From: Bugula neritina
Taxonomy: Eukaryota; Animalia; Bryozoa
Direction: 5' to 3'
Assembly: GCA_964035545.1 (NCBI GenBank)
Contig: OZ037767.1
Location: 5,658,707-5,722,706, forward strand
DNA: 64,000 bases
Shown here: in pieces, positions 1,302 through 34,900 of the stretch
How positions within the stretch are numbered: position 1 is the first letter of the stretch
How the letters are laid out: each line of letters opens with the position of its first letter
Made by a program: the position numbers and the translations under genes
The notes under the pieces: generated by a model
What the model saw: only the letters and a program-made list of their open reading frames with translations
Told to the model about the DNA's origin: nothing
Database searches by the model: none

Positions 1302-1302
1302 C

Positions 1303-1320
1303 TGGTGGCAGCGGTGGGAT
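1303..1320 (+). other. Primer binding site, tRNA-Leu (AAG/UAG type)
   Basis: TGGTGGCAGCGGTGGGAT, 1 nt after the LTR, is complementary to the 3' end ...ATCCCACCGCTGCCA-CCA of metazoan tRNA-Leu. Confidence 0.9.
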
Positions 1321-1355
1321 ATTTCTAGAGCAATACTAGACAACCCACTATAAAG

Positions 1356-2192
1356 ATGGCAGAAGAAGCTCTTCGTGAAGCCGCTGCAGGAATTCGAGAC
1401 ATGGCAAAGGAGGCTGCTACTATACTTAATCAACGGCAACATACTCGCCTACCACCCCCGTCATTTGATGGCACTACTGATGTGGACGAGTTCTTACGTA
1501 GGTTCGAACAAGTCCGAGTACTTAATAAGTGGGAGGATGCAGAAACTGAGCTACGTTTTGATATGGCTGTAACTGGTGCAGCAAAGCGCGGATTACCAGA
1601 GGGCACTTATAAACATCGTGCTGGTCAACTCCGAACCAGGTATCAACTCACAGAGCAAGGAGCCAGTCAGCTACTGAAGCAGGTCAGCTGGAACCCTAAA
1701 GAAAATATACACGAATTTGCCAACTATCTAAAAAGAATAATTCAGATGGCCATCCCAGAACTAGGTGAGGATGGTAGAATGAAGCGCACTATTAAAGAGC
1801 TAATAAATGCATTACCGGATGAGTATCAAACATTACGCTGGGAACTAAATCATCGCACACCAGAGACTGTGGAAGCCACCATAGACATCATCCACCAGTT
1901 TTCCCAACTACAAACAAACACAACCACAGTGCGTCAAGTGAAGAACGACAGTATGGTTGAGTTAGAAGCTCGGCTGGACCAATACATGGCACAGCAAAAT
2001 AAGATGATGCAGAAACTCATGGAAACTCAAGGAGCCATGCTGGAGAAATTGACCTTGTCAACTGCCTCGGTACAAAGCCGACCCCCTAGAACTGCGCCAA
2101 CGCCAGTTACCTGCTATGCTTGTGGAGAGAAAGGGCACTATGCAAGGAGATGTCCCCAATCTAGACAGGGAAACGATTTAGTTCGACACTAA
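1356..2192 (+). CDS. gag: Gag protein (capsid-like region plus CCHC zinc knuckle)
   Basis: 278-aa ORF just after the PBS. PPSFDG..DVDEFL..FE motif; CYACGEKGHYARRC matches CX2CX4HX4C. Confidence 0.95.
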   Translation: MAEEALREAAAGIRDMAKEAATILNQRQHTRLPPPSFDGTTDVDEFLRRFEQVRVLNKWEDAETELRFDMAVTGAAKRGLPEGTYKHRAGQLRTRYQLTEQGASQLLKQVSWNPKENIHEFANYLKRIIQMAIPELGEDGRMKRTIKELINALPDEYQTLRWELNHRTPETVEATIDIIHQFSQLQTNTTTVRQVKNDSMVELEARLDQYMAQQNKMMQKLMETQGAMLEKLTLSTASVQSRPPRTAPTPVTCYACGEKGHYARRCPQSRQGNDLVRH

Positions 2193-2229
2193 ATGACCCA
2201 GTCACTGTCGAACTGAATCCTATGGGTCG
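2168..2229 (+). promoter_or_regulatory. -1 programmed ribosomal frameshift signal (slippery heptamer plus pseudoknot)
   Basis: G GGA AAC at 2168-2174 in gag phase. Stem GTTCGACA (2181-2188)/TGTCGAAC (2206-2213); loop GACCCA (2195-2200) pairs with TGGGTC (2223-2228). The -1 frame is open into pol. Confidence 0.85.
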
Positions 2230-6676: not shown

Positions 6677-7600
6677 CAATATTGTGAATATAGAGACTAG
6701 GTCAAGGTGATTTTTATCGGACTTGCAAGTTAAATCATTCTGGCAATAATTTAACTAACTCAAAGCTAGGTCAACTAATTTTGATATATTGTGATTGGTT
6801 GATACAAGTTGTAATGCTAATTTTATATTAAATTTGTTGAGTTTTATAACATTTTTGTATGTAAATAATTGGTTGTACTCCAAGACGTCCGTTTTGTGCT
6901 CCAAGACGTCCGTAATATGGATATAAATAGAGTTGTAATTTTTAGTAGCAGTCAGTCGACTGTTGCCTGTTGTAATGTTTATAATTGACTCTTATAAATA
7001 TAATAAATTTTATTCTTTGCGAAATACTCTGCTCTTTGATTAGGTTGCTATTGAGTTGGCAATAGTGGTGGTTAGTTTCTATAGGTTTGTCAATGGTGAT
7101 TACTTGCGCTGCAATTCCTGTTGAATCTCGGTGATTCAAATCCCAGGAATCTGATTTCTGTCACTGTCTCTGACTACAGCTGCTGTGATATAAATCGGCG
7201 AACCATAGCCGTGTCCCTGTCACGCTCCAGCACTGTTACCGAACACCAGAAATCATTTTTCCACTGTAGTGACTCTCTTGCGTTGCAGAATTCCTGTCGA
7301 GTCTCTGCGATTCGAACATCAGGAATCAGATTTCTGTCACTGTCTCTGACTACAGTTGCTGTGATAAAAATCGGCGAACCATAGCCGTGTCCCTATCACA
7401 CTTCAGCACTGTTACCGAACACCAGAAATCAATAGTCACTGGAAAATATTAAAATCACATTAGCAAATAATTTGGCAACAAACAGTATTAGATAGTTTAA
7501 TTAGTTTTCCGCACAAGGGAATTCTATTCCGACCCTCATTGTTAAGTGAGATTACTTACCGTCAATAGTGACACCTGGTGTCAGACACAAATTTACTTCA
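6610..7600 (+). repeat. 3' LTR
   Basis: Copy of 311-1301; preceded by the PPT and followed by the TSD CTAT. Confidence 0.97.
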
Positions 7601-7906
7601 CTATAATAAATTCACAGGAGTTTTATACCAAAACTGAAACTTTAAAAAACTAAATTTGCATCCTTATTAGTATAAGCAGTTTCTGATTGTTTTAATATTA
7701 AATAAAGCTCTTCCATTTAAAGAAAGTATTTCTTATATATTTTATCTCCTGTGTTGCTTCATAGCTTTTTAAAAAAATTGGGTTAAAAATCAGTAGTATG
7801 ACAACTCCTAAATAAGTTTCAGCACATGGCGCCAGCCTTTCATTGTTTATTGTGATGACTGTAAAGTAGCCAATCACAATTGAATAAAATTCTTGCTGAG
7901 TTTTAC

Positions 7907-10900
7907 CTCAGGTGTAGGGTTGATCGACTCGATGCCAGCGGAGAACTCATGCTGCTGAAACTGTCTAAAGAACTTAGCAGAAGCAAACAGCTGGTAGATT
8001 TTGCGTCTTTCTGCTATGAAGTCAGCATATTCTTCAGCTGTTAGTGTTGATGTGTATGGCACCTTGACACAGTAGTCTCCTATGAACCACACCTGCAATA
8101 TTATGCAACCATTAAGCTGTATAAATAATTTATTGGCAGCAATTTACCTTACTAAACACAATGCGTGTGACAGAGAATATGAATCAAGTGCAACCCATTC
8201 CAATTAGCATATAAAATTAAAATGATAAAATGAAAATAATTGTAGTATATCAAAACAATAAATAGCTTTAAATGGGTATCAGTTGCGTGATATTTAAATA
8301 ACATCCGCCACAAAGACAACTTTTTATGCAAAATGTTATGCAGCACTACATCATAGTGCCAAGATCACACATATATATTATGCTATACAGCACTACATCA
8401 CGGTACAGATATCATATGAGATATACAGTATTACATCGTGGTACAGGGATCATATACATTATACAGCAAAGTAAAGATTACTTTAATATATCCCCGTGAG
8501 TCAGCGCTAAACAGATGTAGGTTTTTCTTGTCCACTGCCAGAGAAGTGATAGCATCCTGTGGTCTGTGTGACCCCCTGAACTGACCAAGAAGTCCACTCC
8601 TGTAATGCAAATAAGCCCTGTAATGCGCCAGCTTGGGTATGCGTCCCTTCAATTACATTCTACCAACTATACATAACACATCAACTATGCACATCTATTA
8701 TACAGTATCTCAAAGATACAGCATCTTAACTACACATAGTTCTTCTACTATGTGAATTTGTTAATTCTTCAAAAGATTAGAAAACATTAAGCAACTTGAA
8801 GTCTTAAATTATTTATGTTTAAATTAAGTTTATTAAACTATATTATTTGCGACTTCTCCCATTGACCACTAGAATGTTCTAGCAGACCCATGAAATCTTT
8901 TATTATTGCTGGAAGAATTATGACTAAGTTTTAGGCAGAAAGACACTTCTCTGCATGTCTAAAGAACCTTTCACCACTTTTATGCATGTTGATAAACAGC
9001 ATAGCATGGTAAATGTGTGAAGAAATTACTTTAATATCAACAGATATAGTATTTAGCAAGAGAAAAGGCATACCTCAATATGAAGAACATTAAAATAAAA
9101 TCAATTAAAATAATCTCAATATGAAGAACATTAAAAGAAGCATTTTGAATGACACACATGATTAGAAATACATTAAAGGTTTGTAAGATGAACTGACTTG
9201 TAGTGAATAGACCAAGCTCTTATCCACCCATCTAGTCCCCCAGCAAACACTACTGCGCTCTTCTTATCCACCTTCCTGTTGTGAAGGGAGACAAGACACT
9301 CTATACTGTTGGATGCTATCAGCTGCTGTGGCCCCTGCCATTATTTACACACAAATACCAAAATTACTATTTGACCTAGAAATTACATGAAATATATCAA
9401 AATAGATTAATCTGACATCTGGCTTTTGTGCAGAAGTTTATCAAACAGCCTATTTAACAACCCTGTACATACACTGCACATTGGTAACCTAATGTATAGC
9501 AATGAGTATAAAACAAGAGCGTGACGTCTAGTGCTCAGTGTATCATTATTTGTTTTCGGCATCTTTGGTCTTAGTCTCAAATTTTCACAAATTTCAATAG
9601 AATGTCAAATGCCAAAAATATTACCAACCGAAATGCTAAAAGACTGACAATTTAAAAGGAAATTATTGCAGTGTATTCAGTATTAAGTTTAGCACTACAA
9701 TGACTACCAACCAATAGCAACCAAGCATGTGACAACTAAGCCAATCGCAAGCAAGCAAGCAAGCATGTGACACCTTGATTGCTGCGTTAATAACGCTGGC
9801 GTTGGGACTCATGGTGAGTTTATCAGCTTCTCGGCGCCGATCCCTGAGGCTAGAGTTACGTAGTTGCCAGATCTTGTCCTTCAAATTAGGCTGATCCCTT
9901 TTACTGGACTTCCTGCCACCATTTTTATCACTAAAAGACACGGTTCACTGTAATGACTTGCTTATATTGCAAGTCGTTTGTTAAAATTTAGTAATTGGGT
10001 GTAAGAAATTGCAGGCACTAAATATTCAGTTATTGTTAAAGAAAGTTATCATCAACTATAATAGTCTGGCAGAAAAACACCAATTTTTGACTTAGGTTCG
10101 CAACCCTGGATAAAGTTTTTTTCTCTTCTGATTATTCAAATATAGGGTCTAGGTAAGTGTTTCCAGGTGGGTGTGGACTTCTTACCCTTGAGCATTTTGA
10201 GAAATTCAAGATGGCCGCCAGGCACCAGGCGATTCTTTATAATTCAAATGTATCTACCCACTGAGGCTAAATTTAAGGCTTCAATGCTTTGAAATCTTCA
10301 GAAATTGATATAATAAAGATGCATGTACCTTCATCATGTGTTTTATTGAGTAATAGGCAAATGATACCCAATGGTAACTAAGCTAAGCCTTAATCATTCA
10401 CTTTTTTAAAGTTTGATTTAGCCTTGCCGTGTTTATAATTTCCTTGCATCTCTGCATATCAGTTTGTTCTAAATTCATGAAAATTTACTATATGGGGGTG
10501 ATACTATATGCTGATTACAAATATGCCCAACAAATAAAGCTGAAAGGGGTTCTGCAAAATTGAAATGCAACGTCATTGCCATATGAGCTAAATAGCAATT
10601 TATTTCAAACTAGCATGGCTATCAAAAATTTTGTTGAGCTGCCAATTTAATAGTTATTTTCTGTTTTAAAGTTTTAGCTACGTTTTTAAAGTTAGAAAAA
10701 AAGGTGAACAACTTTGATAACACAACACCATGGCTTCTTAAAATAGTTTAATTGCTTTATTATGGACACATCGTTAATCTAAATATTGACTTTTTGCTTT
10801 CGAAAACTACTTTTACAATAAGCACATTTGACTTTTTCTTTAAAAACATTTGTAAACAGTTTTTTATGAATGAGAATCTATTTCATGCTGGGGGAAGTAA

Positions 10901-13900: not shown

Positions 13901-16900
13901 TAGAAAAAACACAGCCATATACAGAACGTATAACATTCATTGGCAATTATGGTGATGTTTTACTTATTATATCGGAGCTCTGTCCCTCCCCCCCCCACCG
14001 GTTGCCAGTTTACACATAGGCCACAAATGAGTGGTAGAGATTTGATACCTTTCTTTAATTGCTGCCAAATCTACACACACCTTAGTTACAATCATAGTAT
14101 TTCGGTTTTGTGGATGAACCATTCAGTGCTTTACAACTTAAGTTTGTGAAATCAGCATCAAAAGTATTTGCAATGAGAATATTAGCTGAGAATAGAAACG
14201 TGTCTTACCTTCAAGAGATTGTGTAGCTGAGGTTTGCCATCATCTGAGTTGGAGGAAATAGACATAAACTTGATTAATGCAGTCGCGTCCTTCTCCTCTT
14301 GTCCACAGGTGCAGAGTTGATGCTCTTCAAACTCCTGACTTGCAGGATCATCAGGTGAATGAATATACTTCTGACAGTTGGGGCATCTGAAAGACATACA
14401 TACGGAGGAGAGAGTAAAATATTAAATATAGTGCGACATGCAGTAGTCCATGACATGTTTGCAGATGAGGTTAATGCAAAAGAAAAGTAGAGTAGATCTT
14501 AAAGCAAATTAGAGTAGAACTCCAAGTAAAGTAAAAGTCAGAGTAAAGTAGAGTAAAGGTTAAAGTAAAAAAGTAAAATAGATGTCAGAGTCAAGCGGGG
14601 CAGGGCAAAGTAAGTGCAAATTTGGTAGTTTTTAGAAATGCCTCATATGGAATATTCATTTGCTGTCTTCATAGTCAGTAGAGTGAATCTGCGAGATACA
14701 ATGTAGTGTTGAGTTTACCCAGTAGCCTCCGTGGTGTAATGGTAGCACACTTGCTTGCAAGCCAGAGGACTTGGGTTCGATTCCCAGTGGGGGCAATTAT
14801 TTTTTATACAACTACTACATAAAAAGCAAAGCAGCGCTGTAACTGCACATTATAAGCAAAGCAAGATAGGACAGAGTAGAGAAAAGCAGAGCAGAAAAGA
14901 GTATTGTAAAGTGAATTGAAAAAAGTGAATAAAAATACATAGTGCAGACTTGATAACTGATGCATGTGCAGTAACAAGGAGAAATTGAAAAGACCTGTAT
15001 GTTCCAGATAAAAATTGATGCAATAGAAGTTATGCTCTCAAAAGAACTTCAACCCACATCTTAAATCAAAAGTTTTTAAAGGCTAAAAAAACTTAAACCA
15101 ATGAAATTTCTTTGTCACTGCACCTAAATATATAAAAAATGTAGTGTAGTTTTTTACGAATAAAATAGAAACTACCAGAAACTAACTCAAACTACTGAAT
15201 GAGCTGTTTACCTTTGCACAGTATCTTCTGCTGCTAGCTCAGTCTGAATACTCGGCTTAGCTGACAAATTCTTTAATCCTTGCAGAGCGACAGACTCATA
15301 GCTTGGGGTACCTGTTGACGCTCTAATTTCTGCGGGTAGCTTCTTCAACCACCCATCAATAGGCTGATCATTCACAGAGTGCTTCCTTTGCTGGTTTGTT
15401 TGAAGCCATGAATCAAACTCATTGGTTATTGTTTGAGCATTGACCAGATCAAGAAAACTAAAACAATATGATAAACTTTATATGCAACTTTAAAAACTCA
15501 TAGGTCTCTGCAGGCATACAAAATCTTTTTTTTAATAGTCCCACGCCTGAAGTTCTAGCATATTGAGTAGTAGAATGTTTGATTTATAACATTAAATATA
15601 ATATTTCCAACTAATAACACATGCTACACAAATACACACCTGCATATACATGCATATACAAATATAGAAATGTATATTACTTATATGTAGGAATTGTATA
15701 TATACACATACACGCACGCACGCGAACACACACATAAATTTATATAGCTTATATGTTATATAATATAAATATATATAATATAAAGAAATATATATTGCAT
15801 ATATGTATGAAATATATATATATATATAGATATATATTTAATTTACTGTAGTTTGCCCGGCTCAGCTTCTAAATTTGGGAAAATGGCTTTTCGAGCAAGG
15901 TCATATTTCTTGGCAATTAGAGAACGCTGTGACTCAACTCTCTTTGGCCTCTCTACACCCAACAGTGGCTTTATGCTTTCTGTGCAGTTTAACCTGTAAT
16001 TGACTTCAACTTTTACAACAATGGTATCTAATGCAAATGGTTTAGTCACTTCATAACTGTCATGTGTTGGTCCATTTTCAAATAGAACAGTGTGGGCCAT
16101 TTTCCACCATAAAAATATGTTTAGTTAATATCAGTACATAACAAATGCATTAGATTAAGAATAAGTTTAACTTGCCTGCAAGCTACTTGGTTAGTTTCAG
16201 TTGACCAAACCATGAGATCACCATCATAAGATGCGGTGAGCAGCACATTGGGATGATGATAGCACATTGCAAGTATATCTTCCTGGTGTTTTTTCTCCCA
16301 GATCTTGTTCATACTCTCAGTTTCATCTGCGTCAATAAAAGCAACAACCCGTCTGTTGAATCCAGCAACCAGAATCTTGCTCGCCAATGACACTATACTG
16401 GTTATCTACAACAATGTTATAGCATGTTTACAGAGACACTTTGGGTCGTATTGATAGATTATTTGAGCTAAATGTACAAATAATTTGCCTATTAGTTAAT
16501 AATCAAATTATTCTACAATTGAATGTATTATCAACAATATTTGATCAACACATTCAATATTTTATTCTTTTATTGAATATAATACCAACTATTTAAACTT
16601 AGAAGTTACTGTCTTGGCTGATTATGATGCTCAACTTAGTGTCATACACCTGTCAGTCAAGTTAGATATAAAGTGGTTGAATATCATAGGCTACAATGTG
16701 AAAAATGCATAAGAAGACTCCCAGCAATACAGATCTACGTTTGCTCTACCTAAAGGAATATTGATAATATTATGGTTAGAATAAGTTTGGCTTTATAGAC
16801 TTTTCACATATAGGGTATACTGTAATATATTGCAGAATCAAAACATTGAAATTCATCAAAGTACATGAAGTTCTAACTCATATTAAAACAAGGAGTTTTT

Positions 16901-19900
16901 TATTTGTGGTGCCCAAATTTTTTAATAATAAAAATTGTTACTATAATATAAAAATAAACACTCATATTATGAACGCAATTTATAAATTATTTTGAATAAA
17001 GAATTCGCAGTAACTTAAAACACTGCTAACTAGCCGTTTGGCTTTTGTAAATTCACAGATATATTTTCATTACAGAGTATCAATAAGAAAAATGTACAAC
17101 ATTTACAATAAGTCATAAAGTCATATATAAAGCAGTAACAGCTTGTGTTGCCATATTTATACACAATATAAGCAAAGACTGTAGAAACTGTACACAAATG
17201 AAAGTTATCCACCTGTAATATAGAAACTACTAAACATCCTTCATCTTAATTTGTCAGAATTCAACTTCAGCTAAAATAAATTTTAATTCAAACTACTTTT
17301 TGAAGCAACACTTGCAGTCATTGAAGTCAAAAATGCATTACACAAATCTTATTTTACATTAGATAAAGAATTGATCAACCAGAAACAAATTTATGTGCAA
17401 CATGTTTGTTAGACAAAGCAATATACAGTAAGGCTCAACAAAAAGCTACAACTAAAATTTATTCAACTGCTGTAGCATATCAGTTGCCATTAATAAAACA
17501 GGAAAGTAGAAACTTGGTGTTCACGACGTCTCTATAATATTGTGTCTGAGGGATAAGGTAGCCTGGTCTTCTCTTTTATTATAATTACAAGATTCCTCTT
17601 GATTGGATTGACTTTTTGATATGGCATTAGAACTACCTAAAACAAGCACGCACCAATCTATTTATCTCAATCTTACATAATTTAGATGTCAAGTAATTCT
17701 GTTACTGTAAGATCAATAAAACTGATAAGAATACTGACCAAACCGTTTCTGTCTGATAGATTGAAGATGCCGAATGAAAGATGGAGACAGGCCAGTGTAT
17801 ATCAGTGGATTACTAATGATCGTACACAGTTCAATAAACTCCACTACATATGCAGTCTTATCATAGCCAAAGGTGGCCCCTGACTCGCCCCTTAGTCCCA
17901 CTACGTAGTAGGCTATGGATGGTAAGCAGAGCATTACATAGACGATAGGCAGCACGGCGGATGCAATGGCTTCTCTGTCTTTCTAAAAACACAACAAAAA
18001 TGGTGAAGTGAGACTACTGCAAGGGTCAAGGTCTCTTTCAAAAGTCAAGATTTATTGCAAAGGTCAAGGCCTACTGTTGCCTAGCACTCCGTTTTATCGG
18101 GAAGCTTTTAAAAATATATTCTGTATAAAGACAAGCGTACACAAAAATAGCTCTTGTTATAAAAATTATTCCGTGAGTGCACTCTGTGAGGCTAACAATA
18201 ACTTGATACTTATTTTGAGACACTTGTAGCTTTTTAGTTTTGTATTTTTTATAGTTTTTGATTTATTTTCAACCTAAATTTATACATTTTTTATATATTT
18301 ATGTTCCTAATTTATATATTATTTATATTTATTTATATACCTATGTATAAATATTATATTCTATATTTTTAGTTTTCTACAGTATACAAAATATTGCATT
18401 AGCTAAAATCATGAATTCCTAAACTTTCTAATGATACAAAAAAGTGCAGGTGGAAAAACGTGCTTCAATAAACAGATAAAAGGTTTGCAACCAATTTTTT
18501 CTAGACTGTCGAAATAATCTAAAATACGGTGATAGTACTAACTTTGTTAGATTGACCAGAGAACTTGGAGTTACTGCCAAAGGTAGCCAGTCGGTCTCTC
18601 TTTCTCTTTACCAGAACATAGATGATGGCAGAGTAAGAAGAGAGTATCACAATATTAGGGATAACCATGTTAAACATCAATACTGACCACCAAACAAACT
18701 ACAAGCAGTTATGTAAACAACAAACTGTACAAATTATAAAAAGGTACATGTCAAAACAATTATATCTAAATTCATGAATGGCTGTTTTAATTATGTTAGC
18801 ACTTAATGCATTTGCCAGTTGTTAGATAGCAAGAGACTTTTTAAATAGGTTTGAGCTCATGATACTTTTTAAGAAAACAACAGTTCTTTTACCGTTTTCA
18901 AGTCAAAAGAAGAGCTGCTTTCGAAAAAACAAATTTCTTTGTGAGCAGTGCATCCAAGATGGCCGTCAGAAGGTTCTAGATATATGGGTTGGAAAAACCC
19001 AGGATTCTGATCAAGCATCGTTCTGTTTGGTTTCAACTGTACTTTGTCTATCAGAAAATAAATTCATAAGCCTACACTATAAATGAAAAATAGAAAGCCA
19101 ATAACTTTGGTTGAAATAGTTGTACAATAAAATGTGCATACACTGGCAAACTGTATGTATTAGCAATTTGATGATAAGATTAGCATTAGATAAATTTCAA
19201 GCTCAACTTTATGTAGTAGTTATATACTAACCAGTGCTACAAAATACTGCTGAAGGAACTCCAGTGCAGATCACAAGAGTCCAGGTAAATATTATACGAG
19301 CAAAGTTCACAGAGGTAGAAAATGGACGTAACTTAGCTGCCATCAATGGCCATCTTACAGCTATTAGTCTGCAAAAGATAACAACCAGTATAAATTGAAA
19401 ATCTTCAACAAAATAAATATACTAGCTACAGTTCAAAAACATAAAGAAATAAACTATCAGCCAATTATCTACATACATGCCACTCATTTGTAAATATGAA
19501 GATTCAACATGAATATTTGGTTCAACTGACTACATATAGTATTTAGTTCAACTTATATCTATATTGTATGGTCTTTAGCTCAGCTGACTATATCATATAG
19601 TATTTGGTTAAACTGTCTATAGGCTATTATATTGTCTCTGGTTCAACTGTCTAGTATATTTTGACAATTAAAATAAGTTTACTATATAATTATTGCTGAA
19701 GAACAAGAAATAAGTCAGTTTTAAATCAAGTTTTAAGCATTTTTAAATCTGCAATAAACAAAACTCAAACCAAGGCATATTCTACTCCACAGCTGAATGT
19801 AGGCCTTTCTAAAAAGAGTATAATTTAAAAACGAGTGGAATGATTACAATTACAATGACAATTACCACTACTAGTTTTGAACTTATTTTTTCTGCATGTG

Positions 19901-22900
19901 ACCATTATAATAGCTTAAACATTTTTTGAAATTTAATCGAGAGTCTTGAAATACAGAGTGTAATAAGCAAAAGTCTCGTAAACACTAACCTTGAGATAGC
20001 AATAATGACCATTGAGGTCTGACCCAATGTTCTAGAGACAGTTCTTGTGAAGCAAGACACCTTACAGTAGGTATTAGAGCTTGACCACAGTGCCTCCAAC
20101 TTTGAACCATACATCCACTGCACAGAATATCATCTTAAGTTTGAATAACTGCTAATAGCCGTTATTTAACAAAAACTTTCTTTTAATAATTAAAACTTCC
20201 TTATATGTTAAAGAATTATCTGTGGTGCTTTTTAAAAACCAATTTTGTAAATTTTCAAGAACAGCATTTTTAAAAAAAATAAACACTCAAATTATATGTT
20301 ATTTATGTTTGCTTATATATGTCACTAATCGCAGGTTAAAAAAGAATCATTTTATCAAGTATGTCTTTATTTAGTAGCTGCCTGCATGTACCATGCCTGA
20401 CAACTCTAAATGAATTTCTAGAAAAAAAACTTAAAGAACAATTTCTATTCAAGTAGTAATCATTCTAAAGTGTGAAACTTTTATACAACTTCACAATTAA
20501 GTATTTATAAACTAATGTAAAAGTGTGAGGAGTGCAGACATTTAAATGCAATACATTAAACACTAGTATAGTGAAACCAACAATGGTAAGCTTATCTTAT
20601 CTTTGAGAATCAATAGATAATACAAAACATAGATACAAAGTGGGAACATCAAGTCAATATGGTATATATTTATTTCTGATTTCAAAAGCTGAATATAAAA
20701 TTGTCCCATCAATAATACTTACTATAGCTCCAATTCTAACGGCAGATCTATATATATCTCCAATAGTTAGTGATATCAAGAACACATCTAGAGGCATGTG
20801 TCTTTTCTTGCGAATTCTGTATATTATGTAACATAGTTGAATAAGATTAAACAAAATCCCAAAACTTCCTACTACTGCATAGGCGACTATGAAACCTTTC
20901 TACAAAATAGAAACCAAAAGTGTAAGAAGCAAGATGGTAAAGTGTTTGCACTAGAAAGGCATTGGCAGGACATATTATCCTGAACAATGAGTACAAACGT
21001 GTAAAAAAAATCTAATAGCTCTCAACATCTTCCTCATTAGCAAAAGTGGATTGAATGCATTTGGGTCAATTAATTACTTTTCTAACCTATTGAGCAAGCA
21101 ATTTGCTTAGAAGAATGCTAAAGTTGAAATATTAAACCAATTGCAAAACTAAACAATATGGGGATGCTATAAAATTTTTAACATTATTTCAACAGTCATG
21201 GTATGCTTAGACCTAGATGAACCTTGGCTGTGATCAATTTCCCTCAAAATATTTAACCGTTTGTAACTTTGAGACTTAGTCTAATAACATAGATAATTAA
21301 TTTTTGAAGTATTTACAGTTATAATGTCAAAAAGGGGTTCCATCACATTTCTCTCAGGACTACATGAATAAATAGTTCATTTTCATACAAGGTAAGCTTT
21401 CTAAATATACTGCATGATTAACACAACACTTACCATGTCTCTATCAGGCATTATAGCTCCTCTTTCAAAGAAGATAGACTTATTTTCATAACATGGCAAA
21501 ATGTGATTTTGAAAAAAATTAAATGAATTTGGGTTATCACTACACTTCCGGAGTATTGTTTTCAGCGACGGTTCTTCTTGATCATACGAAAAATTACATG
21601 CACTTGTCATACTGAATGCTGAGATACACACGATGTGTACAAAGTTTTCTAGTGACTGTTATGAACTGCATGCATGCAACTAGCACAACGTGGATATTGC
21701 CACTAGTAAGTAGCTAATCAAACAGATAACATTAAACTATCAGTATCATTTTTAATTAAAATCATATCTAATTCAGATAAAGCTCATATGAATGATAAAA
21801 TAATCACAACTGGCATTGTAAAAGTAAAAGTATATACTAGTTTGTCACATGAGCTCTCAGTGTATATTGCTAAACAGTGTAAAAAGACACTAAAAATAGT
21901 AGGGAAACAGTAAAAAATGAAATAGCCTGCTATCACAAATTTATGTTAATAAGCAGTTAGACAAAAGGCACTAAGTGCAATTTGTGTCTAACTGCATTTA
22001 CTCTTGGCAATTGCTGGTCTTGATATTATGCAAGCTACAAATTTATTTCTCATAAAAATTACCTCAAAACAAATACCGTACTCTGTTATGCAAAATATAA
22101 TTACTTTACTGCCTTATAATATACGTTATAAAATTACTTTTCACCCATATATCTTAAAAACTTAAGCAGTGAAATAATATGCAGCAAAACTAAAACATTC
22201 GACACAAAATCTTAGTGCATTTTTATTACCTTGCTGTGAACACTAGTGGTAAGGTTTAATATTATGCAATTATGTCATTTTATTATTACTTTTTATAACA
22301 CAACATTATAAGCACAGTTCTTTTCTATAGAGTATAAGCCATCACTAACCAAACCATAATAAAAGAGCACTGTGATAGAATACGCAAAATAAGCACCCAA
22401 TATAATCTAACAACACTATACACAACTTAATACCATATGATAATACAATAACATAAAACAACAAAAGAAAATTAATAAATAATATAACAATACATTACAA
22501 TAAAACAATACAAATACATAACACAATAATATATTACTATTACATAACATAATAACACATTAGAACAACACAATACATTTAAATGATATAGTATAGTAAC
22601 ATACTACAATAATACAGCATAGTTACATAAGAGTATAATAAAATTATACAGTACAATAACATAATACAACAATATATTACAATAATACAATACAACTACA
22701 TGATATAAAATATAGTATAATAACACAATACAATTACATAATAATATAACAATAATATACCACAATAACATAACACAAAATAACAAATGATTTTCAACAC
22801 TCACTTCTGCTTTCTCCTCCACACTCATGATTCTCAGACAGTCACCATTATGGAAGTTCCAGATTTTAACAGAGCCATCCCTGCCCCCAGTAATCAGTCT

Positions 22901-25900
22901 TCTGTAAGTGTGGTCAAACGACATGGCTGTTATATCCACCACCTGGTGTCAGGAAAGACAACGTCTTATTGTCAGACAACTCCTAACTGTGTGATGCATA
23001 CATATCCTTATACTATATCATTCGCTGATGAGAAAATTGTGGAGTATACTTTAAATAACGGCAATTTTTTTCAGCACAGAAACTTATGCCTATACTCATG
23101 CAGCATCTGTACTTAACACCATTACAGATGCTACATGAGTAGAACTCAAATTATTGTTTATTGTCAACAGTCCATATTTCTATATATAAAACTGTAACAA
23201 TTATTTTCTCAATAAAGTGAAAGTTATGCGCATCTTCATACAAAATCAAAACCATGAGTAAATTGAATATACAGCTAGCTTTAGCTACACTAATTCATAC
23301 CATACATTGATAGCTAACATTCAACAAGCTATTGCCAAAAGCTTTCACAAAACTCTTACAAAAAAAGCTTTGACAGGAAAAGCTCCTGTTACAGACCTAT
23401 TATATGAAAATTTTATATAATTTACTATCCCTGTGAGAACCCCTGGTGGAAATGGAAAGGACTTATTAAGATGAGGTACAGGAGCAATTATGACTGGATG
23501 ATCTTCCTACCATCACCGATGGCCTTCACTGGGATTCAAATCTATGACTTCGTGTTTACTAGGTCAGCACTCTAACCCCCCAGACTACGGCCCTGATCTC
23601 TTTTTAACATTATATAAGAGGGCCAATTATATAGTAAGAACATTTTTAGATTCTATAAGCATGAACCGCGCCTCTGAGCAGCAAATTTTTTCATAATTTG
23701 GTCAATTTGTTTGCTACTGTAACTCACAAAACATGCTCATGCCCTAGAGTATATGATAGCTTGCAGTCCTACCATTTCCTTGTTATAGAGGGTGGTCACA
23801 TGAGCTTTATCGAACATGAGCTTCTTTTCACCAGTTGTGATATCCCAGACACATACACTAGACCCACTGCTAGCACTTACTACGAGGTCATACATGGGGT
23901 TATAGAGTATGGAGCAGATACTACTCTCATGGCTGTTGGACCTGCAAAGAAAAATCAGGAAAAACTTGGTTTAGTGACAATTTTTCAAAGTTATCTTTTC
24001 CAAATTGCTTCAACATGACTTGGACCTGGTTTATCTGCATCAATTATAGTTATGAATCAATATTAAATTTTTATTTTTAGTTATTAAATCATTAATTAAT
24101 TAAAATTTAATTTTGACATTTAATCATAACTTAAACTGGTCAAAAATTAGACAAATTAATTTTTAGAATATGCTACTTTATAAAGTTTAAAAAAGAAATT
24201 TATTATTTTTGAAATCTTTCAACTGGGGTTGTATACCAGTTTCTTCATTATGCACAGTACATCTAATTGAAGATAAAATAGTTTAGCTCTTTGCCTCACT
24301 TACTTCTTTGTGTCTTCACTTTCTAAATCCGGAATAAATAAGTTGAGATCTGTTGTTCCGACTATAAGTACTTGACTGTAGTTGTTAAAGAAGGCGGAGC
24401 TTATTGCTTTGTAGCCAATCTGCTTGGGGAAACTTCTAGAAGGTATAGTCTGAACTAAAAATAGAATAAAACCAGTAACTAGAAGCTAGAAAATGATGAC
24501 AAGTGCCGGAATTTCCAAAAGGTACTTTGTTTTGAGCATTCTGAATAGACAATATACACATACACTATTGTCTACCTCCAAAGCTGATTTGCTTTTATAA
24601 AAGAGTAAAAAATGAAACAAACATGGAATGGGTCATTTTACTTAATTTAGTACACACTGAAATCTTTATTTTTTAGCTATTTTTCACAATTTAGCTGGTA
24701 ATAAACATGGCTTTTTGCTAAAACTAATAAAACACTAATAAATATACCAAAACAATTAAGGTTCTTCTTAATTTTGCTTGATTTCCCATGTTTTTTCTTA
24801 TATATATATAGCTTATTAGGAGTGAGGACCGTTACGAAAAAACCGTAACGGCCGCAACCAAAAGTAGCTGAATAATTAGGAAAAAACATGGGAAATGAAG
24901 CAAAACTAAAAATAACTTTGATTATTTAGGTGTATTTATTAGTGTTTTACTAGTTTTGGCCAAAAAACCCGTGTCTATTAGCAGTTAAATTGTGAAAAAT
25001 AGCTAAAAACTGAAGATATCCAGTCTGTACTAAATTAAGTAAAATGACCGGAATGCAATCAAACGCCAGAATGCTAATCATGTAAAAAAGTATTTTGATG
25101 TAATGACACTAAATTACATTTAGGAGCAGTAGTGGAGAAATTGAGATAGCCTCAGTTCTTTAATTTTATTAAATTTTTGTTTAGGGCGCGGGTTGAATTT
25201 CCTGTTACACCTCTAATCTAGAACACAGGCTTTTTTCTCAATTTTTCCATTACTGTCGACCAAAACATGGCTCACCCAAGGTCTGATCTTTCAGACTGAA
25301 CACAGAGACATTTTTGTCTCTGCTGATGGAGATACAGAGATCTCTCTCGTTGTTCACCATCAGATGGAGTACAGCACTGGTTCCCTTCAGTCTGAATATT
25401 GGTCCTGTGTTGATGAACGGATTCCATCCTCTTATGTTCTGCTCTATTCCACCACAGATCAGGATATTCTGTTTCTGAAAGCAAAATGGAACCCCATCAG
25501 TGGAAAGAAAACTCACAAAATTGATGTTACATGAGCCAGCAATTTTGAAACTATGGTAGTAAACTAGATAAAAAAAGTGTCTCTACTTATAAGGCTTAAA
25601 CTGCTCTCCATTCTAATCTAAATTTAGTATGTACTGTTTTAGGTGTCAAGAAACGCCTAGCTCTCCAATTTATTTCAAAAGCCATATTTTTAACATTATA
25701 TGTACTTCTAAGAACCTTTCACCTTTTATTACAGAGTGTGTGGTGAGTAAATGCATCAACTAATACACTATCAACTCTTATTGAAGTCAAACAATTTTAC
25801 TATTTACTAGGTGCATCAAATGGTAACTTCATTAGAACTATTATCTTAAATCTACTGCTAAAACATAAAAACTCTAATATATAGATATTTGAATTGTAGA

Positions 25901-28900
25901 ATAACCAGATAATAATTTTTTATTTGTTACACAAAGTAACTGAAAAATACATAATTATAGTAACTCCAATAACTAAAATGGCCCACTAATATTGATATCC
26001 TACATATATATAAAATATGTTCATCGACAAATAAATAAACTATAATAAACTGTGAATATTTTACAAATATATTCCAGTATATCAAATTGTATGTCACTAT
26101 GAATATTAATCATACACTTACTTTGCTATAGTCAAAGCAGACAACTCCTTTACTGACTACAAAGTATTTACTCTTGAGGTCATGCATTGAGGTCAAGGCC
26201 ATAGCAGTGCTGGTCTCACAACACGCACTCACTACTGAGTCTAACTCTGGTAGGTACTGTATAGAGCGCACCCAGTCTAAGTGCAACCTCTTCACTTTCT
26301 GTACCTACTTTTCCAAACGAATCTTTCTATAAGCAGCTCGGAGTTGGGGTGACAGAGTGCAGTATTTTGGGACAGTTTGGAGTTGGGAGTTTGGGGTTAA
26401 AGTTGGAACTTCAAACCTCAACTATATACTCGAGGCTCCAAACTACTGCACTCAGTCACTCCCAACTCAGGACTGCTTATAGATAATTTGCTTCCAAGCA
26501 GAGATATGAGTCATTAGCTTTATACAGTAAAAATAGCTGCAGTACAGTTTAGCTGCAATTTGAAGTTGTTTGCACAATGCTATGTTTCCAAACGTTTCAA
26601 ATTTATGCCTCTATTCTCTTAAACTTTAAAGTCTAACACTGCAAAAAGTAATTTTTTCTTAAGTAATGAAAAACAGTTTGATTTAAACTAAAAATAAGTG
26701 TAAACAATTTTAGTTTTCTTCTTTGTTTACTCTCAATGTTAGACAATCAGCTACAGATATGTCAAGAGTGTAAGCCACATTCAGGGTTATGTTCTCATGT
26801 TAAACTTGAACATTCAAGCATGTCATGTGCCCTGTTGTCAATTATATAATAACAATGTGTAACCGAAATCTAATGCGTTGTTGTAAAATTCATCTTCCTA
26901 TGTTTACAAGTAGACTTGAACTTACATGGTAGTGGTTTCTGTGTCCAAACTGAATGTCAAGGACAAACTGCTTCATGGTAATTCGCTTCTGACTAGCCAC
27001 TCCATTGAACAAACTTCCGGCTAAGCATTTCCAGAAAGTGAGGATATAAATATTACCCCCTGTATCGCCCCAGAACAGTCTGGCCTGTCGAATAACATAA
27101 TAATCACAATGAAGCTCAGGAAACTAAGTTTTTCCGTTAGTTCATCATTATTATGCATTGAGAGAGAATATCATTGAAGGTAATTAAGAATTGACACAAA
27201 TATCTAATCTATTAATAATAGAGAAAAAATTTAAACATCAAGCTTAACTTATTAATTATCCCAGCTTTGTTATATGGTTGCTTTTTCATAAGACAATGAT
27301 TATAAATGCCTGTCATAAATCATAAATGATATAAAAATGAATAAAGACCAATAAATTATTATAATATATTCTAAAAGCAAAATCTGCCAATTTATGTAAG
27401 CCAAAATATTCTTCTTTGATTATTGATTAATTATCAAAACAACAAAATTATTGTAATAATAAAATGAGTGATTCAACAAGGCGACATCAAGTCATTGAAG
27501 GCACAACTATAAATATTATATAAGATACTTTTTTCTCTGATCTTGTAATCTGAAGGACCCTTGACATGCTCATAAAAGAAGGCTGGATAATTTAATAACT
27601 AAGGTTCATAAAATATTATCATATCCAATCAAAGAAAGCAAGTGAAGACATTAGCCAATCAGAGAACAGAAACTCGCTATTACTAAAGTAACTAAATACG
27701 AGATCAAGATGCAGACGTTAATCAAGCAGACGTAACGATATAATGATCGCGCGCAGTCAACTATAGCTAGTCCAGTGAGAATACACTATACCGCGTGAGG
27801 AGATTAACGTGTTTGGTGCAGACTTTATGTAGATGAACTTAATATCTGATCATTATTTACATTCTGCAACTTGACTGGTGCCAGTAAATTAAAACTCTGT
27901 CCATTAACTTTTCAACTGCCTTGGGATCGGGACATCAATATTGGTAATATATACTCTACTACTGTACGGTTATTATGAAGATGAGGGTCAAAGTTCTTTT
28001 AATCTTGTACCTATTTTATGGAGCTATGTGTGGAGGTAAGTTTCATTTTACTATTATTTAACAATTTAAGTCGAATTGTCAGAGAGTTGTAAATTTGGAT
28101 TACTAAAATTTACGCTAATCTCACCATCAGCAAATTATTGGTATTTTCCTTCATAAGTTACCAGAGTTAATTTCTAATTAAAAATAACAATAACTCTGCA
28201 GCATAGGAGCAGAACTTGGTAATATACATACAGATCTGAAAAAATTATGAAATAGGTAAATAGTTTTATTGCAGAATTGAGCAGTTTTATTTAGAACCAC
28301 TGCATGTGACGAGAATCTAATTGTTGGGAACTTAGTCTAAAAATTACAGAGTAACCAAGTGGATCAGTAATGCCGCACATCCTGTAAGGAAATTCGCCTC
28401 AAATGAAAAGCCAAACATGGACTTTAGATTTGTTCTTCACTGATTGATGTAGTTGACGTAAGTGCTGAGTGTTCTACTGTGCAAGCAGGCTGTCGGCCGA
28501 ATGAACATAAATGACTACTAATCAAAATTCCGCATTTAAAAGTAAAGTTAAAAGTTAAATACCCAATAGGTATTACAGTACGGTGCACAAAGTCTAACTG
28601 TACGTTCAGCATGTTAAATTGTTAGTTTGGTAGGCATGCGATGTGTAAAAAGTAATCTTCTTTCAATAGATTGATTTTCAAAGAGATTTCAAAAGGTTTA
28701 ATTGTGTAATAGATTAATAAAGACCACCAACCATGCGAGTGTACTTCCTTAGAGAAATAAATAATATTGTGTGTATGCAACAATTAGTCTATTGCTAAAC
28801 TCTAAGAACAATGAATATATCCAGCTTTTAATTAGCTGCATACTTTTCAATTCTACTTTTACATTTCAGTTGGCAATAAAACAGAAATGAATGCCTAAGT

Positions 28901-31900
28901 GATATTATATAATGTTGAAGTTTGTAACTAATTATCAAAACCATGTTGATCTTATTTTCACACCCTAACAAAACAAAATAGCATTTTGAAATATTATAAG
29001 CAAACAAAAGGGAGGAAAACATCTGGAAACTAGCAGACTGAAGGGGGACAATAAGTCACACTTTAATGTTGACTCAACATAAATCCCATTCTAATTTACA
29101 TATTTACAACAAATATAGTTGACTTTCATGGCTGATTCGTGACAGAATGTTTAGGTCTTGTAACCACAAACTCCAAGAGAGTATAACCTAATCCAGTCCA
29201 TATTTGCATGCTACACACTTAAGCTACACTGACTATACTGCAAAGATAATCTTATTAAAACCAAACCAAGATTCTCATCTCTCTGTGAACTGTAATTCCA
29301 GACAATGGCAAACAGAGCCGATTTCAAATTTCTATGGAAACAAAGCAGCTAGTCTTGGGGAAGGCTCATCTGTATTTAATGTCAATGTTTGCTTCAGGTT
29401 TAAACTTAAATCCATTATTTGGTGTATGGTCATACTTTGATGTTTATTCTCTTAGTAGGTAAACACCAAACATTATAGCATAGCCAGTCTGATGCAGATT
29501 TTCAGTTGCTTAGAGTTTAAGTTTATAGTGTTCCTACCTTGTTTTAATTCATTAAACAGAGCGAGAGCTATTTCTAGAACTAGAGCTATGTCATAGAGCA
29601 ACCATGTGCCTCTGTAGCCGTGTTGACTAAACCTGTTCCAATTAATATATTAAATATTTATAAAAAATCAACACAATACTACGAAAGCTTATCAAAAGAC
29701 ATTATCAATTGATATTTTTGACTTTTAATCACAAAATATCTTACAATCAAAACATTCATTGCATCGCTTTACATAACACGTTTTCACATATTTAATGTTT
29801 TGATATTACCATAAAATAAAGAGCATGTATTACAAAGTCTATAAAATAATAATCTCAACCTATCTTAGAAATTAGCATAAAAAGAGGTAAAACCACATAA
29901 TATTTTAAGGTTTATTTAGTGATAAGGTGAAGTCAAGAGGCACAAACATATTAGGGGGGATAATTACAGAGAGCATGTGCCTTGCGTATGTTGCTAATTA
30001 GTCTTCATTTCCCTATCATCACTTTCCTACTGATGTTAATTTCAACTAATTACACATGTAAACACAGCCAGTGCAAAACCATACGATACATGTCTGCTGG
30101 AACCACATCTTTAATAATGAATAATTAGTTTTAATTTTATTGTGCATTTAGAATAATTAGCAAGATGTCAACATCAGCTAGCTATTGGTAAAATTTCAAA
30201 ATCATCTGCTCCCATTACCTATTGATTAGAGTCAGTTTTGGCTTGTAGAAAACATGGAGGCTAGTGAACAAAGTGAAAATAGTAATTAAAAGAATAGAAG
30301 AAATGCCTTGTTTTAAAACTGTAGCTAATGTTGCTAAACATCTGAAGCCAAACAAATGCTACTGAAGCACATCTCAATGTAGCTATAATTATAATATAGG
30401 AAATCCCGTTCTAAATGACTCCACTTGTAATTGCAAACATAAGCATGCCTAGTCTATTTATAAACTACTCAAGAACAATAAACAATGCACAATGTAGAAA
30501 CAGTCATAACGTATCCTATACAATAACAAGGCATTTGCCTGTGAGTCAGAATTTATCTCAACCATTTCCACCACCCTACAATGTGGCATTGCTTTAGTTT
30601 CCAGTTTAGATTTACTCTCTTAGTTTGAGGTTTCATTAAACAAGGTGATGTGAAAACAGAAATTAGTGCAAGAATAAAGCACTCTCTGAAATAGCACGTA
30701 TTTCATACCCTGATAGCCAGCTGCAAATAACTCTGTATGTTTGGTAAACATATATCTAACTGTGTTTTATTATAGTTGCCGAAAGTCACGGGTTTGAGAA
30801 GATGAATGCTGACTTTCATGTTCCTATCTACTTTGACTTTTTAACAAGCTCTACGCTGGTACTGAGTCAGGGCACAAGCCTCTCTTTGGTAGAGTTAAAC
30901 ACTGGATTGATTATGCCGCTGGTGGGATCAGAGACGGCAGGTGGTTACGTGGATGGTGAGAGTAAGGAGGCAAGATTCGCTGACATCACAGATGTGGTGG
31001 TACAAGGTGAGTGTGAGGCTCAGCATGCATTAGATTTCACTTTCCAAGTAAATTAAACAAAATGGATTTTAATCGAGAAAAAAAGCAGTAAGAGTGGAAA
31101 GCTTCTAGAAATGCTAAATCGCTGAAGTTTTAAATTTAGTTTAGCCATAGAAAGAGCTTCTGGAAATTGCTATTTCCAGCAGTGGCGTGGGTTGATAACA
31201 CAGATAATGGGTTTAAACAGGGTTAACAGATGAGCAAGGGTAACAGGCCTGTATGGTTATGCAGATATCTATATATAAAATACAAGACATAAATAAAGCA
31301 GCATTCTAGCTGTATGGTTCACCAGCCAAATACTTCCAGTTCATTCACTTCTAGAAAGGCATTGGCAGGGGATTCTACACCTTGCAAGCCTCCCCACCTT
31401 GCTTGTATCATGTGAAACAATTTTGAAATGCTTAGCATTTCAGCTGTTAACAAAGGTTATATACCTAACTTCACAATCATTTTATATTTCAGAGTAAAAT
31501 GTAGAGTTTGATTCATTATTTAAAGCAAATAATGATAAATGGTATTATAGTATTATATTGTATACGTGTCATAAACTAGTAAATGTGCTATATGAAACTG
31601 GTTTGAAAGTAAACAAATATATCATTATCATGCTGCATATAATCTACAATAAACTTTACCCACAGACCGGACTGGGTTCAAGCTACTCTGTGAGAAAATA
31701 CAATGCTGAATCAACTTATATTATGAAAAACCAAATATTAAATTACGATTAATAGCTAAAATAGAAGATTGGGATGAAACTAGGTAGGCAAATTTTTTTA
31801 CTACACTAAGCTTTTCTATGAGAAGTGCTAGCAAATGTAATGATAACTATTACTATTAGCACATCCTAACCACATAAAACTGAGCCAATAAAATTATATA

Positions 31901-34900
31901 TTCTATTATATAACTGTTTTGGCTTTCCAAGAGCTGGGTGGGCAGCAACTGCAGCTCTTGTTGACTGCTTCCCTATTTTATTAGCAGACACACTAATTGG
32001 ATAATAAAGAATAAATATTATCATAGCTATGATTGCTTAGGCTACACCAGAATGCAAGGTACTTTACTGAGCCAAAGGAGTTATAAGGCATTTTATATAA
32101 TTAATTTTTGTGGACTTTTACACTGGTTTACAATAAAATTTGTAGCGTTCAATTTTTATCTAGCTAAAAATTATAGATTCTATTGAACTAATTAGCATAC
32201 ACTGTGCATAAATATGTTTAATAGCCAGGTTAAGCTTGCAAAACATCATAATTTCTGAGTTCTTGCATTTAGAATAGCATCTGCTTTACAAGAATTGGTA
32301 TTTGTCAAGAACGAATTAAAAGTTAATATTCTCAAATGTAATCTCTTTATTTTAAATTAGAACACAAGAATATCTTATAGGTTTTAAAGTTTTGGCTAGT
32401 GTAGGTCTCTACTTTGAATCCAGCTGAATAAGCTAAATTTCAATTAACTTACTCGAGGCTCTGTGATGCTACGACCACCATGCAAGTATAGGCTAATGTT
32501 TTGGCATTTCATAACAATATTATTTTTAATATGAATTACACAATCTAGAGGGTAAAAGCAAGCAATCCAATTTATTTCAAGTACTGATGTGTATGCAACA
32601 AGAGTAGCACTTGAGTATCACATGTTAGTAAATACTAATAAGATAGTAGAATAGTTTAGCATATAATATGTTACCCTACTAACTGCAAATATAAGTATAG
32701 TTTTGTGTGCATGTTCAAGTACACTGCCTATGTCTAATCAAAGAATTGTTTGTATCAACAGTTGCCAGAAGCTTAGGGGTGCTGGGCAGCAGTTAGCATG
32801 CTGCTTATACAGCTAGGGTAGCGTAGCAGGCAGCATTGACATCTGCTGTTAATATATCACAGAAAGGATATATCAATCACCTGAATTATGTTTCATTATT
32901 CACGCTAGCCAATCTACACACAACCTATAATTGTCATTGTTGTTTTTCTAGTGGTCTTTACAATTTCAAGTACCAAGACACAAGCACCCATAGAGTCTCC
33001 ATAGAGATTGTGTAAAACAATTATTTTTGCTAAGCATTCCCTTACATGATTAATAAGCATATTATGTTATGCAAATTAAGCTATAGTGCAGTAAAGGTAA
33101 CATTTTAATATGAATACATGTTAGGCTGGCATGTGCTACATATCTCACCTTTCTACTGATAAGTTAAAAAACTAGTCTACAGTTTTTGTCACATTTTAAA
33201 GAAGCTAGCTACAGTTCAGCATAGAAGATTTTGCGTAGCCTATTTTGTTGTTGTTAAGTTGAAAACAACAGACTGCCAAAGTTTTAAATCAATTATCAGA
33301 GAAATGTATTTACCAACTAGTTATTGAATAATTAGTTATTGGGAAAAATGTTATACTGATTGAATATGATTTCCTGTACAAATCGTAGACTCTAATGTGG
33401 CATGTATTCAATCGCTCTGAACAAACTATTGGGTTTCATTAGAACTGTGATACACACATAAGAGTTTTTCCTAAGCTTACAACGGAGCCTGGAGTTGGAC
33501 TTATTTAAACTTATTTCCTAAATCATTCTGTGGGAGGAAATAAGAAATAAGTTAAATAGATCATCCAATTAAGAAATTTGTAAACATTTACAGTAATGCA
33601 AATCAGAGCAGCAACAGAAATATCAAATACTGCCTATCCAATAATCATGTTTCAATGGTTATGATGCACTGATGGGCAAATGCCACATGCATATAATTTG
33701 CTATAACGCCATTGTTACAAAACAGTGAAAAATAAGTGCTTGATACAATACCAGCACCCAGTCTGTTATATAATTATAACATTTACCTCTATTACAACAG
33801 CTGTAGCCGAGAAATACCTCCATTGAATAAAATGGAGGAGAAACAATACAATGGAGATAAAAGTGTACATTAATTATTTAAATTCACATTTTGACAGCCT
33901 GATATGCAGAACTAAGGCAAGATGAATTATTGAGTCTTTAAAAAATAGATTTCGTATTGACATTAGCACTGGGTGATTGCATAATAAACAGCTCTGTACA
34001 GATAGTAGATGGAAGTTCACTGCTGAGTCAACATCAGGCATTATTCTGAGGTAAACAAATGTGGAGATCCTTCCAGCTGTATTCAAGTGATAAACACTAC
34101 TACTTCACTGAAATGCAGACTAGATTCTGAGATTTCTTAACTCAAAGTGAGCCCTACAGTCCCTTTCAGACAAAAACTCTCACCAAACAACATCCATTTA
34201 ATGAGCTGACGATGAAAATTGAAAATCATTTTTTCAACAAATTCTAATGATTATCAGTGATTTGAGTCAGTCATCCTATTTCCCCATTACTTTCTGTTGT
34301 ATTATACATTTCACGGTACTTATAGAAACAGCTTTTTAAATATATTCAAAAACTCATATGATCAGAGCAGCTTTAAATATTCTCGTGAAGCAAAGAGTTA
34401 TAGTTGGCAATTGGAGACCTATAATGAAATTGATAGAAACATTGTGTACTGATTGTAAAGATGTTAGTTTTGATCAATATTGACAGTCATTTACTGTGAT
34501 TTGTCATACAACTTTTAACAAAAGATATATAATTTTTATTATGTGTCACTATATTATTATTATTATGGTGTACCTTAAACCTGCATAAAAATAATTCAAG
34601 AAAAATATTGAAACAGTGTGGATTATATAATTTCTGAAATGTAATATAATATACAAATTATATTGTTGACATCCTTTGATTTCATCCAGATAATATTACA
34701 CTGGAATTCTCACAATTTTATTGTCATTTTTATTAACTTATATAAGGATTAGCCTAAAATTATTATTTTAAAGTGATTTCACGCATGCATTGTTTAAGCA
34801 GTTGATAGATTCATATTTTGATAGTCACAAAATACGATCTACTTGGAGACCATTCAGTGTTCAGTCCACTAGTTTAACTCTGCATTTATTATTCACTGCC

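Follow-up and report, generated by a model that had tools for sequence, protein, structure and literature searches.

Does a gene of the bryozoan Bugula neritina hold a second, complete gene in one of its introns, on the same strand, and if so, how might the two messages be kept apart? The locus that raises this question lies in a window of 64,000 nt of B. neritina DNA (the whole stretch that was analysed; AT-rich, with about 33% G+C), and all positions given below are relative to that window. On the minus strand, a gene for a WD40-repeat protein is interrupted by a long intron, and within this intron the first-pass annotation had placed the exons of a G protein-coupled receptor (GPCR) read in the same direction. 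Our analysis indicates that these exons are likely to form a separate, functional protein-coding receptor gene. Its host is a WD40 gene of sperm/cilia type, the orthologue of 'WD repeat-containing protein on Y chromosome' (WDY), and the receptor gene, read in the same direction as the host, occupies an old phase-0 intron.

The receptor gene itself is complete, intact and multi-exon, and it runs on the same strand as its WD40 host. Its parts, including the transmembrane helices (TM), extracellular loops (ECL) and intracellular loops (ICL) that the exons are predicted to encode, are as follows:

21434-21610, minus strand: GPCR exon 1, 59 codons counted from its own ATG (21610); codes for the extracellular N-terminus
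20723-20899, minus strand: GPCR exon 2, TM1-TM2 (N1.50, D2.50); G, N and D invariant in alignment A2
19990-20117, minus strand: GPCR exon 3, ECL1-TM3; its last codon is the split Arg of an S/T-R motif that takes the place of DRY
19232-19368, minus strand: GPCR exon 4, ICL2-TM4 (W4.50)
18893-19047, minus strand: GPCR exon 5, ECL2 with two conserved cysteines; alternative acceptor at 19041
18543-18698, minus strand: GPCR exon 6, TM5 (P5.50, Y5.58) and ICL3
17713-17982, minus strand: GPCR exon 7, TM6-TM7 (P6.50, NPLIY), helix 8, and the stop codon TGA at 17715-17713
17458-17580, minus strand: two AATAAA hexamers, 132 and 249 nt past the GPCR stop; candidate poly(A) signals

Joined, the seven exons give 1200 nt including the stop, or an open frame of 399 amino acids, just as the first-pass annotation had it. 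All six introns are bounded by GT-AG with pyrimidine-rich acceptors, and the phases after exons 1-6 are 0,0,2,1,0,0; use of the second exon-5 acceptor, 6 bases downstream of the first, would give a protein of 397 amino acids. An in-frame stop lies 17 codons upstream of the receptor ATG. Given that 7.2% of codons in the surrounding intron DNA are stops, the probability of 399 open codons arising by chance is P ~1e-13. The host acceptor follows 1.3 kb past the GPCR stop, and both AATAAA hexamers lie well before it. On the other side of the receptor, directly behind the host donor and before the GPCR start, an AT-rich tandem array occupies 22424-22785 (13-nt period, about 26 copies).

A sibling lineage is represented by a 1111-bp JGI metagenome contig (L002), which runs from within exon 6 through intron 6 and exon 7 to 157 nt past the stop. 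Over 131 codons of exons 6-7, the comparison of this contig with the window gave a nonsynonymous divergence (dN) of 0.027 and a synonymous divergence (dS) of 0.166, hence a dN/dS of 0.165 (Fisher P 5e-5); the ratio was 0.19 for exon 7 and 0.11 for the part that encodes TM6-TM7. The exons differ by substitutions and one in-frame 3-nt indel, exon 6, which carries the indel, being identical at 129 of 131 nt, while the intervening intron carries 12 indel events. Receptor exons 6-7 are under purifying selection, a property that the first-pass annotation had named as one to look for. The stop codon of the sibling comes three codons earlier, and the extreme C-terminus of the receptor is free to vary. 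The first of the two AATAAA hexamers is not conserved in this lineage.

GPCR searches and family scans were made exon by exon. Five exons, each aligned with its orthologues, gave profiles (A1 for exon 7, A2 for exon 2, A4 for exon 3, A5 for exon 4 and A6 for exon 6), and a reference alignment (A3) was made from 12 uninterrupted PF00001-positive open reading frames (ORFs) of the same genome, which are of the 7tm_1 type. The profiles matched A3 in hhalign as follows:

Exon 2 profile, A3 columns 2-36: TM1 Asn and TM2 Asp; P 0.0038
Exon 3 profile, A3 columns 49-61: Trp and the TM3 Cys (C3.25); P 0.015
Exon 4 profile, A3 columns 96-123: TM4 Trp; P 5.7e-4
Exon 6 profile, A3 columns 144-182: TM5 Pro and Tyr; P 9.7e-6
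Exon 7 profile, A3 columns 254-305: TM6 Pro and NPxxY; P 3.7e-4

The five matches are strictly colinear on A3 (Fisher-combined P ~1e-11) and, together with the signature residues, they support the GPCR identity proposed at first pass. Kept in four genes are N1.50, D2.50, C3.25, the ECL2 Cys, R3.50, W4.50, P5.50, Y5.58, P6.50 and NPxxY (NPLIY in the window). Against PDB sequences, the best 60 of 100 listed matches of the exon 7 profile were all class A GPCRs with corresponding helices, and the exon 2 profile likewise matched class A GPCRs at corresponding helices, among them FFAR2 and CCK-A at TM1-2, except for one syndecan membrane helix. The best PDB matches were spread over peptide, amine, lipid and chemokine receptors (E 0.004-0.05), and no subfamily or ligand class is assignable from them. 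A plain hydropathy scan gave five peaks above 1.5; TM2 and TM7 were placed by the profile alignments. The likeness to class A GPCRs (PF00001) consists of signature residues and of five exon profiles colinear with 7tm_1-type sequences, whereas the receptor differs from them in having S or T rather than D/E at position 3.49, in a CWxP tryptophan that is not fixed (6.48 is L, W or V), and in single exons that stay below the Pfam threshold.

In its own genome, exon 7 retrieved only itself, and the profiles of exons 7 and 2 brought up one further exon, a distant paralogue. This locus (L008, G000:C2:20464926-20468153) was the sole other genome match to the exon-7 profile (E 7.5e-7); it carries a TM5 exon (595-771) and a TM6-TM7 exon (1495-1776), and since the break between them is identical to that of the nested receptor, it is a distant multi-exon paralogue. 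On these comparisons the receptor can be classed as a fast-evolving, lineage-restricted orphan rhodopsin-class (class A) GPCR, an undescribed branch of a known family.

Is the intron around this receptor truly a single intron of a single gene? Three features frame the question:

22805-22942, minus strand: host exon before the intron; WD40 repeat (Pfam WD40, E 2e-6), 50-75% identity to orthologues
16406-22804, minus strand: host intron, 6399 nt, phase 0; holds the whole GPCR gene
16176-16405, minus strand: host exon after the intron; WD40 repeats

We searched the exon at 16405-16176 against 1.84 billion representative proteins and obtained full-length matches, spanning the whole exon, to proteins named WDY in Lingula, Anneissia, Tachypleus and Liolophura. 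The named orthologues (Lingula XP_013411389.1 and Anneissia XP_033123331.1) share an architecture of an EF-hand followed by WD40 propellers. When ten full-length orthologues were aligned to the window with tblastn, they met colinear host exons from about 41938 down to 8443, and in all ten the residues at the junction in question followed each other free of gaps: residues 592-636 and 637-711 of the Lingula protein, or 556-600 and 601-675 of the Liolophura protein, are adjacent across it. Named orthologues of other phyla are 37-46% identical to the window over exon 16405-16176 and about 50-75% identical over exon 22942-22805. Because the orthologue residues are contiguous, the two exons are separated by a single phase-0 intron with no host coding exon missing between them, which upholds the first-pass junction. 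The donor (GCAGAA followed by gtgagt, 22805/22804) and the acceptor (ttgtag followed by ATAACC, 16406/16405) are both in phase 0, and the intron cuts within a WD repeat. By its EF-hand, its WD40 repeats and its colinear exons, the host can be assigned as the WDY orthologue, an EF-hand plus WD40 propeller protein. The WDY gene of Drosophila is a male-fertility gene.

The same intron position is shared by two genomes (L012 and L013) that are more distant than the relatives discussed below; the intron measures 63 nt in the former and about 512 nt in the latter, both without a GPCR, and its position is old. The WDY genes of Lingula (L010, span 3001-7258) and of the chiton Liolophura (L011, span 1001-5931) lack this intron, having one intron each near the 3' end, and synteny in these two animals is uninformative for that reason. 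For these brachiopod and mollusc WDY genes, this structure points to massive intron loss or a retrocopy origin. Unlike these single-intron genes, the host in the window is intron-rich, its 13 or more exons extending across about 34 kb or more, and it contains at least this one nested gene in sense orientation.

The first-pass annotation had suggested synteny in related genomes as a check on the nesting, and here the same arrangement was found in three further lineages, reached through exon-level ORFs similar to the host exon: L003 (Logan SRR25757610), L004/L006 (which with L005 represent one species; ENA ERZ4903317 and ERZ1740065) and L015 (ENA ERZ4903326). In each of them GPCR exons lie on the host strand between the same two host exons, and the host splice sites are canonical and conserved. 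Exon boundaries in these relatives were set from conserved junction contexts, which replaced a free enumeration of splice sites in L004 that had proved too permissive (128 in-phase solutions). In L004 the receptor gene is single and intact (5056-7919), and its seven exons show the phases 0,0,2,1,0,0. L003 has two tandem copies, 34% identical to each other, within one 4.6-kb host intron: copy B (7867-9374) has the phases of L004, and copy A (5274-7597) keeps its junctions unchanged except for intron 5, which is unusually short at 37 nt and shifted to phase 1. The contig of L015 begins inside the receptor gene, and exons 3-7 are visible at the same place.

All exon junctions fall at matching protein positions, including that within the Arg codon at the end of TM3, which is split after AG (with A or G to follow) in four genes. 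The first exons of L004 and of both L003 copies have their own ATG and a common Cys/YED/YY pattern. Identity across the lineages is 76-80% for host exon 22942-22805 (L003 and L004) and 63-71% for host exon 16405-16176 (L003, L004 and L015), compared with 31-39% for the receptor exons; the receptor therefore evolves fast, yet it keeps its signature residues, its cysteines and its exon structure. The contigs of L004 and L006 are 99.9% identical and gave no polymorphism signal, and a metagenome scan with the exon-7 profile returned only an already known contig. Together, these comparisons show that the nesting is real and old: the receptor gene has remained whole within this intron in four lineages or more, in one of them as two tandem copies.

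How, then, is such a locus expressed? Two transcription units are the simplest reading. The receptor would have a transcript of its own, which would start near exon 1 and be polyadenylated within the intron; the host mRNA would arise by a splice from 22805 to 16405 that removes the receptor gene along with the intron; and interference would most likely be avoided by activity of the two genes in separate cells or at separate times. In each of the four complete GPCR gene models, exon 1 carries an ATG of its own and codes for a conserved N-terminal segment, which argues that the receptor is translated on its own. Several results weigh against a separate, functional receptor gene in this intron. 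A word search with exon 7 found only the sibling genomic contig and no transcript-derived sequence; a word search with the host exon found three genomic exon ORFs and no transcript; and the representative-protein search gave no transcript-derived protein for the host exon. Pfam returned no 7tm_1 match on nine exon pieces from the window, and its best 7tm_1 score on ten orthologue exon pieces was 12.7 bits against a cut-off of 30.5, Pfam being weak on separate exons because single exons are too short. L003, L004 and L015 are called relatives only from their 63-80% host-exon identity. Finally, spacing in L003 is tight: the first ATG follows the host donor by 330 nt, the two copies are 269 nt apart, and the host acceptor comes 170 nt past the last stop. 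Separate promoters would have little space there, and the arrangement would equally suit co-transcription with the host. In the same intron, an AATAAA is found about 35 nt past the stop codon of copy B, ahead of the host acceptor.

Under co-transcription, which we consider unlikely, the receptor mRNA would be cut from the WDY primary transcript in an operon-like manner, by spliced-leader trans-splicing to an acceptor shortly before the ATG and intronic polyadenylation, with no promoter of its own. The L003 distances would suit this, as would the AG dinucleotides found at most 12 nt upstream of all four ATGs; however, chance alone would place an AG that near in about half of all cases, and the spacers around the receptor in the window, 1.2 and 1.3 kb, are ample for an own promoter and terminator. 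Equally doubtful is the further idea that the WDY intron is an 'intronic operon', in which a cilia/sperm WD40 gene and the receptor would be co-expressed, the latter for example as a chemoreceptor of sperm or ciliated cells; if true, such coupling would explain why the pair stayed together in several bryozoan-type lineages. It is very unlikely that the host is instead two genes, an EF-hand/WD40 N-terminal one and a WD40 C-terminal one, with the GPCR between them and nested in neither. The intron is long (6.4 kb) and the junction 22805>16405 was seen in no transcript-derived sequence, but the break would fall inside a WD repeat, across which the orthologues continue from one residue to the next, the canonical donor and acceptor are both conserved in the three relatives, and the same intron is only 63 nt long in L012. 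Moreover, neither a stop nor a terminal exon closes the upstream part, and the downstream exon does not begin with a start codon of its own.

The first-pass annotation had also raised an in-frame chimera on paper, in which GPCR exons 2-7 would serve as alternative 3' terminal exons of the host and give a WD40-7TM fusion (22805>20899). The premise is true: the host donor at 22804 and the exon-2 acceptor at 20900 are both in phase 0, here and in L003 and L004, and the frame is open. The in-frame match follows trivially from the two phases, however, and weighs little since phase 0 is the commonest phase. The four complete models that keep an ATG-bearing exon 1 and a conserved N-terminal segment speak against the fusion, and a cytosolic WD40 half of about 600 residues with no signal peptide, placed ahead of TM1, would be expected to reverse or prevent the normal N-out insertion of a GPCR; we regard the fusion as highly improbable. 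It is extremely improbable that the GPCR exons belong to a decaying pseudogene or that their frame is open by chance. Such a reading could draw on the failure of Pfam on single exons and on a PF00001 six-frame scan of the 216-Mb assembly, which gave 143 matches and none at the receptor locus. Against it stand the open-frame probability, the dN/dS and intact orthologues with conserved intron positions in several lineages, by which it is ruled out as far as sequence can tell. A separate receptor gene, transcribed in sense within the WDY intron, remains the reading that we prefer.

Beyond the exons that flank the receptor, the following parts of the host were located; except where stated, bounds are approximate:

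23749-42668, minus strand: upstream host part, with exon bounds taken from the limits of tblastn high-scoring segment pairs (HSPs) and from ORF segments
42414-42668, minus strand: ORF within which a possible host start-codon exon lies
About 41681-41938 (EF-hand), 41324-41434, 40801-41001 and 40424-40543, minus strand: upstream host exons, HSP bounds
26944-27123, 26113-26304, 25256-25510, 24336-24458 and 23749-23934, minus strand: further upstream host exons, HSP bounds
9197-9313 and 8443-8619, minus strand: two further host exons, given as tblastn HSPs

The C-terminal approximately 250 residues of the orthologues were not located by tblastn in the window. The host has another very long intron, about 13 kb in length, at 27124-40423. 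Downstream of the last located host exon (8443), the plus strand carries at 800-7100 an element resembling a long terminal repeat (LTR) retrotransposon, with ORFs of 278 (1356-2192) and 1484 amino acids (2222-6676); the same weak match at 783-649 and 7082-6948 suggests two LTR copies, and the element may lie in a host intron or beyond the gene. On the minus strand, 46998-48254 and 51775-52539 hold long frames of short-period repeats (LYSI/LYSTLYSI-type and YYSNVIL-type), which appear to be non-coding tandem repeats in introns of an upstream coiled-coil gene.

In mouse and human, more than a tenth of the genes belong to host/nested pairs (PMC11694760), and a nested unit can disturb its host through intron retention, exonization or premature polyadenylation (PMC11694760; PMC3192792). 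The first-pass statement that most nested genes are antisense was too strong: the two orientations are 'broadly similar' in number in mouse and human, with a slight bias to the opposite one (PMC11694760). Since same-strand nesting is common in well-annotated genomes, the arrangement described here is not exceptional. Like known pairs, it consists of a complete gene that is contained in a single intron of a larger host and shares its strand; it differs in that the nested gene is itself split into seven exons, not a short insert with few introns, and in that the pair is found in an invertebrate phylum, is kept over divergent lineages and has undergone tandem duplication in one of them. It is a new, well-conserved example of a known arrangement and not a new kind, and it leaves the knowledge of nested genes unchanged. 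What it adds is an unannotated, lineage-restricted family of class A receptors in a poorly studied phylum. It also offers a clean natural case in which to ask how a host pre-mRNA could bypass a series of good inner splice sites together with a poly(A) signal, a question that would become sharper if the animal really uses spliced-leader trans-splicing.

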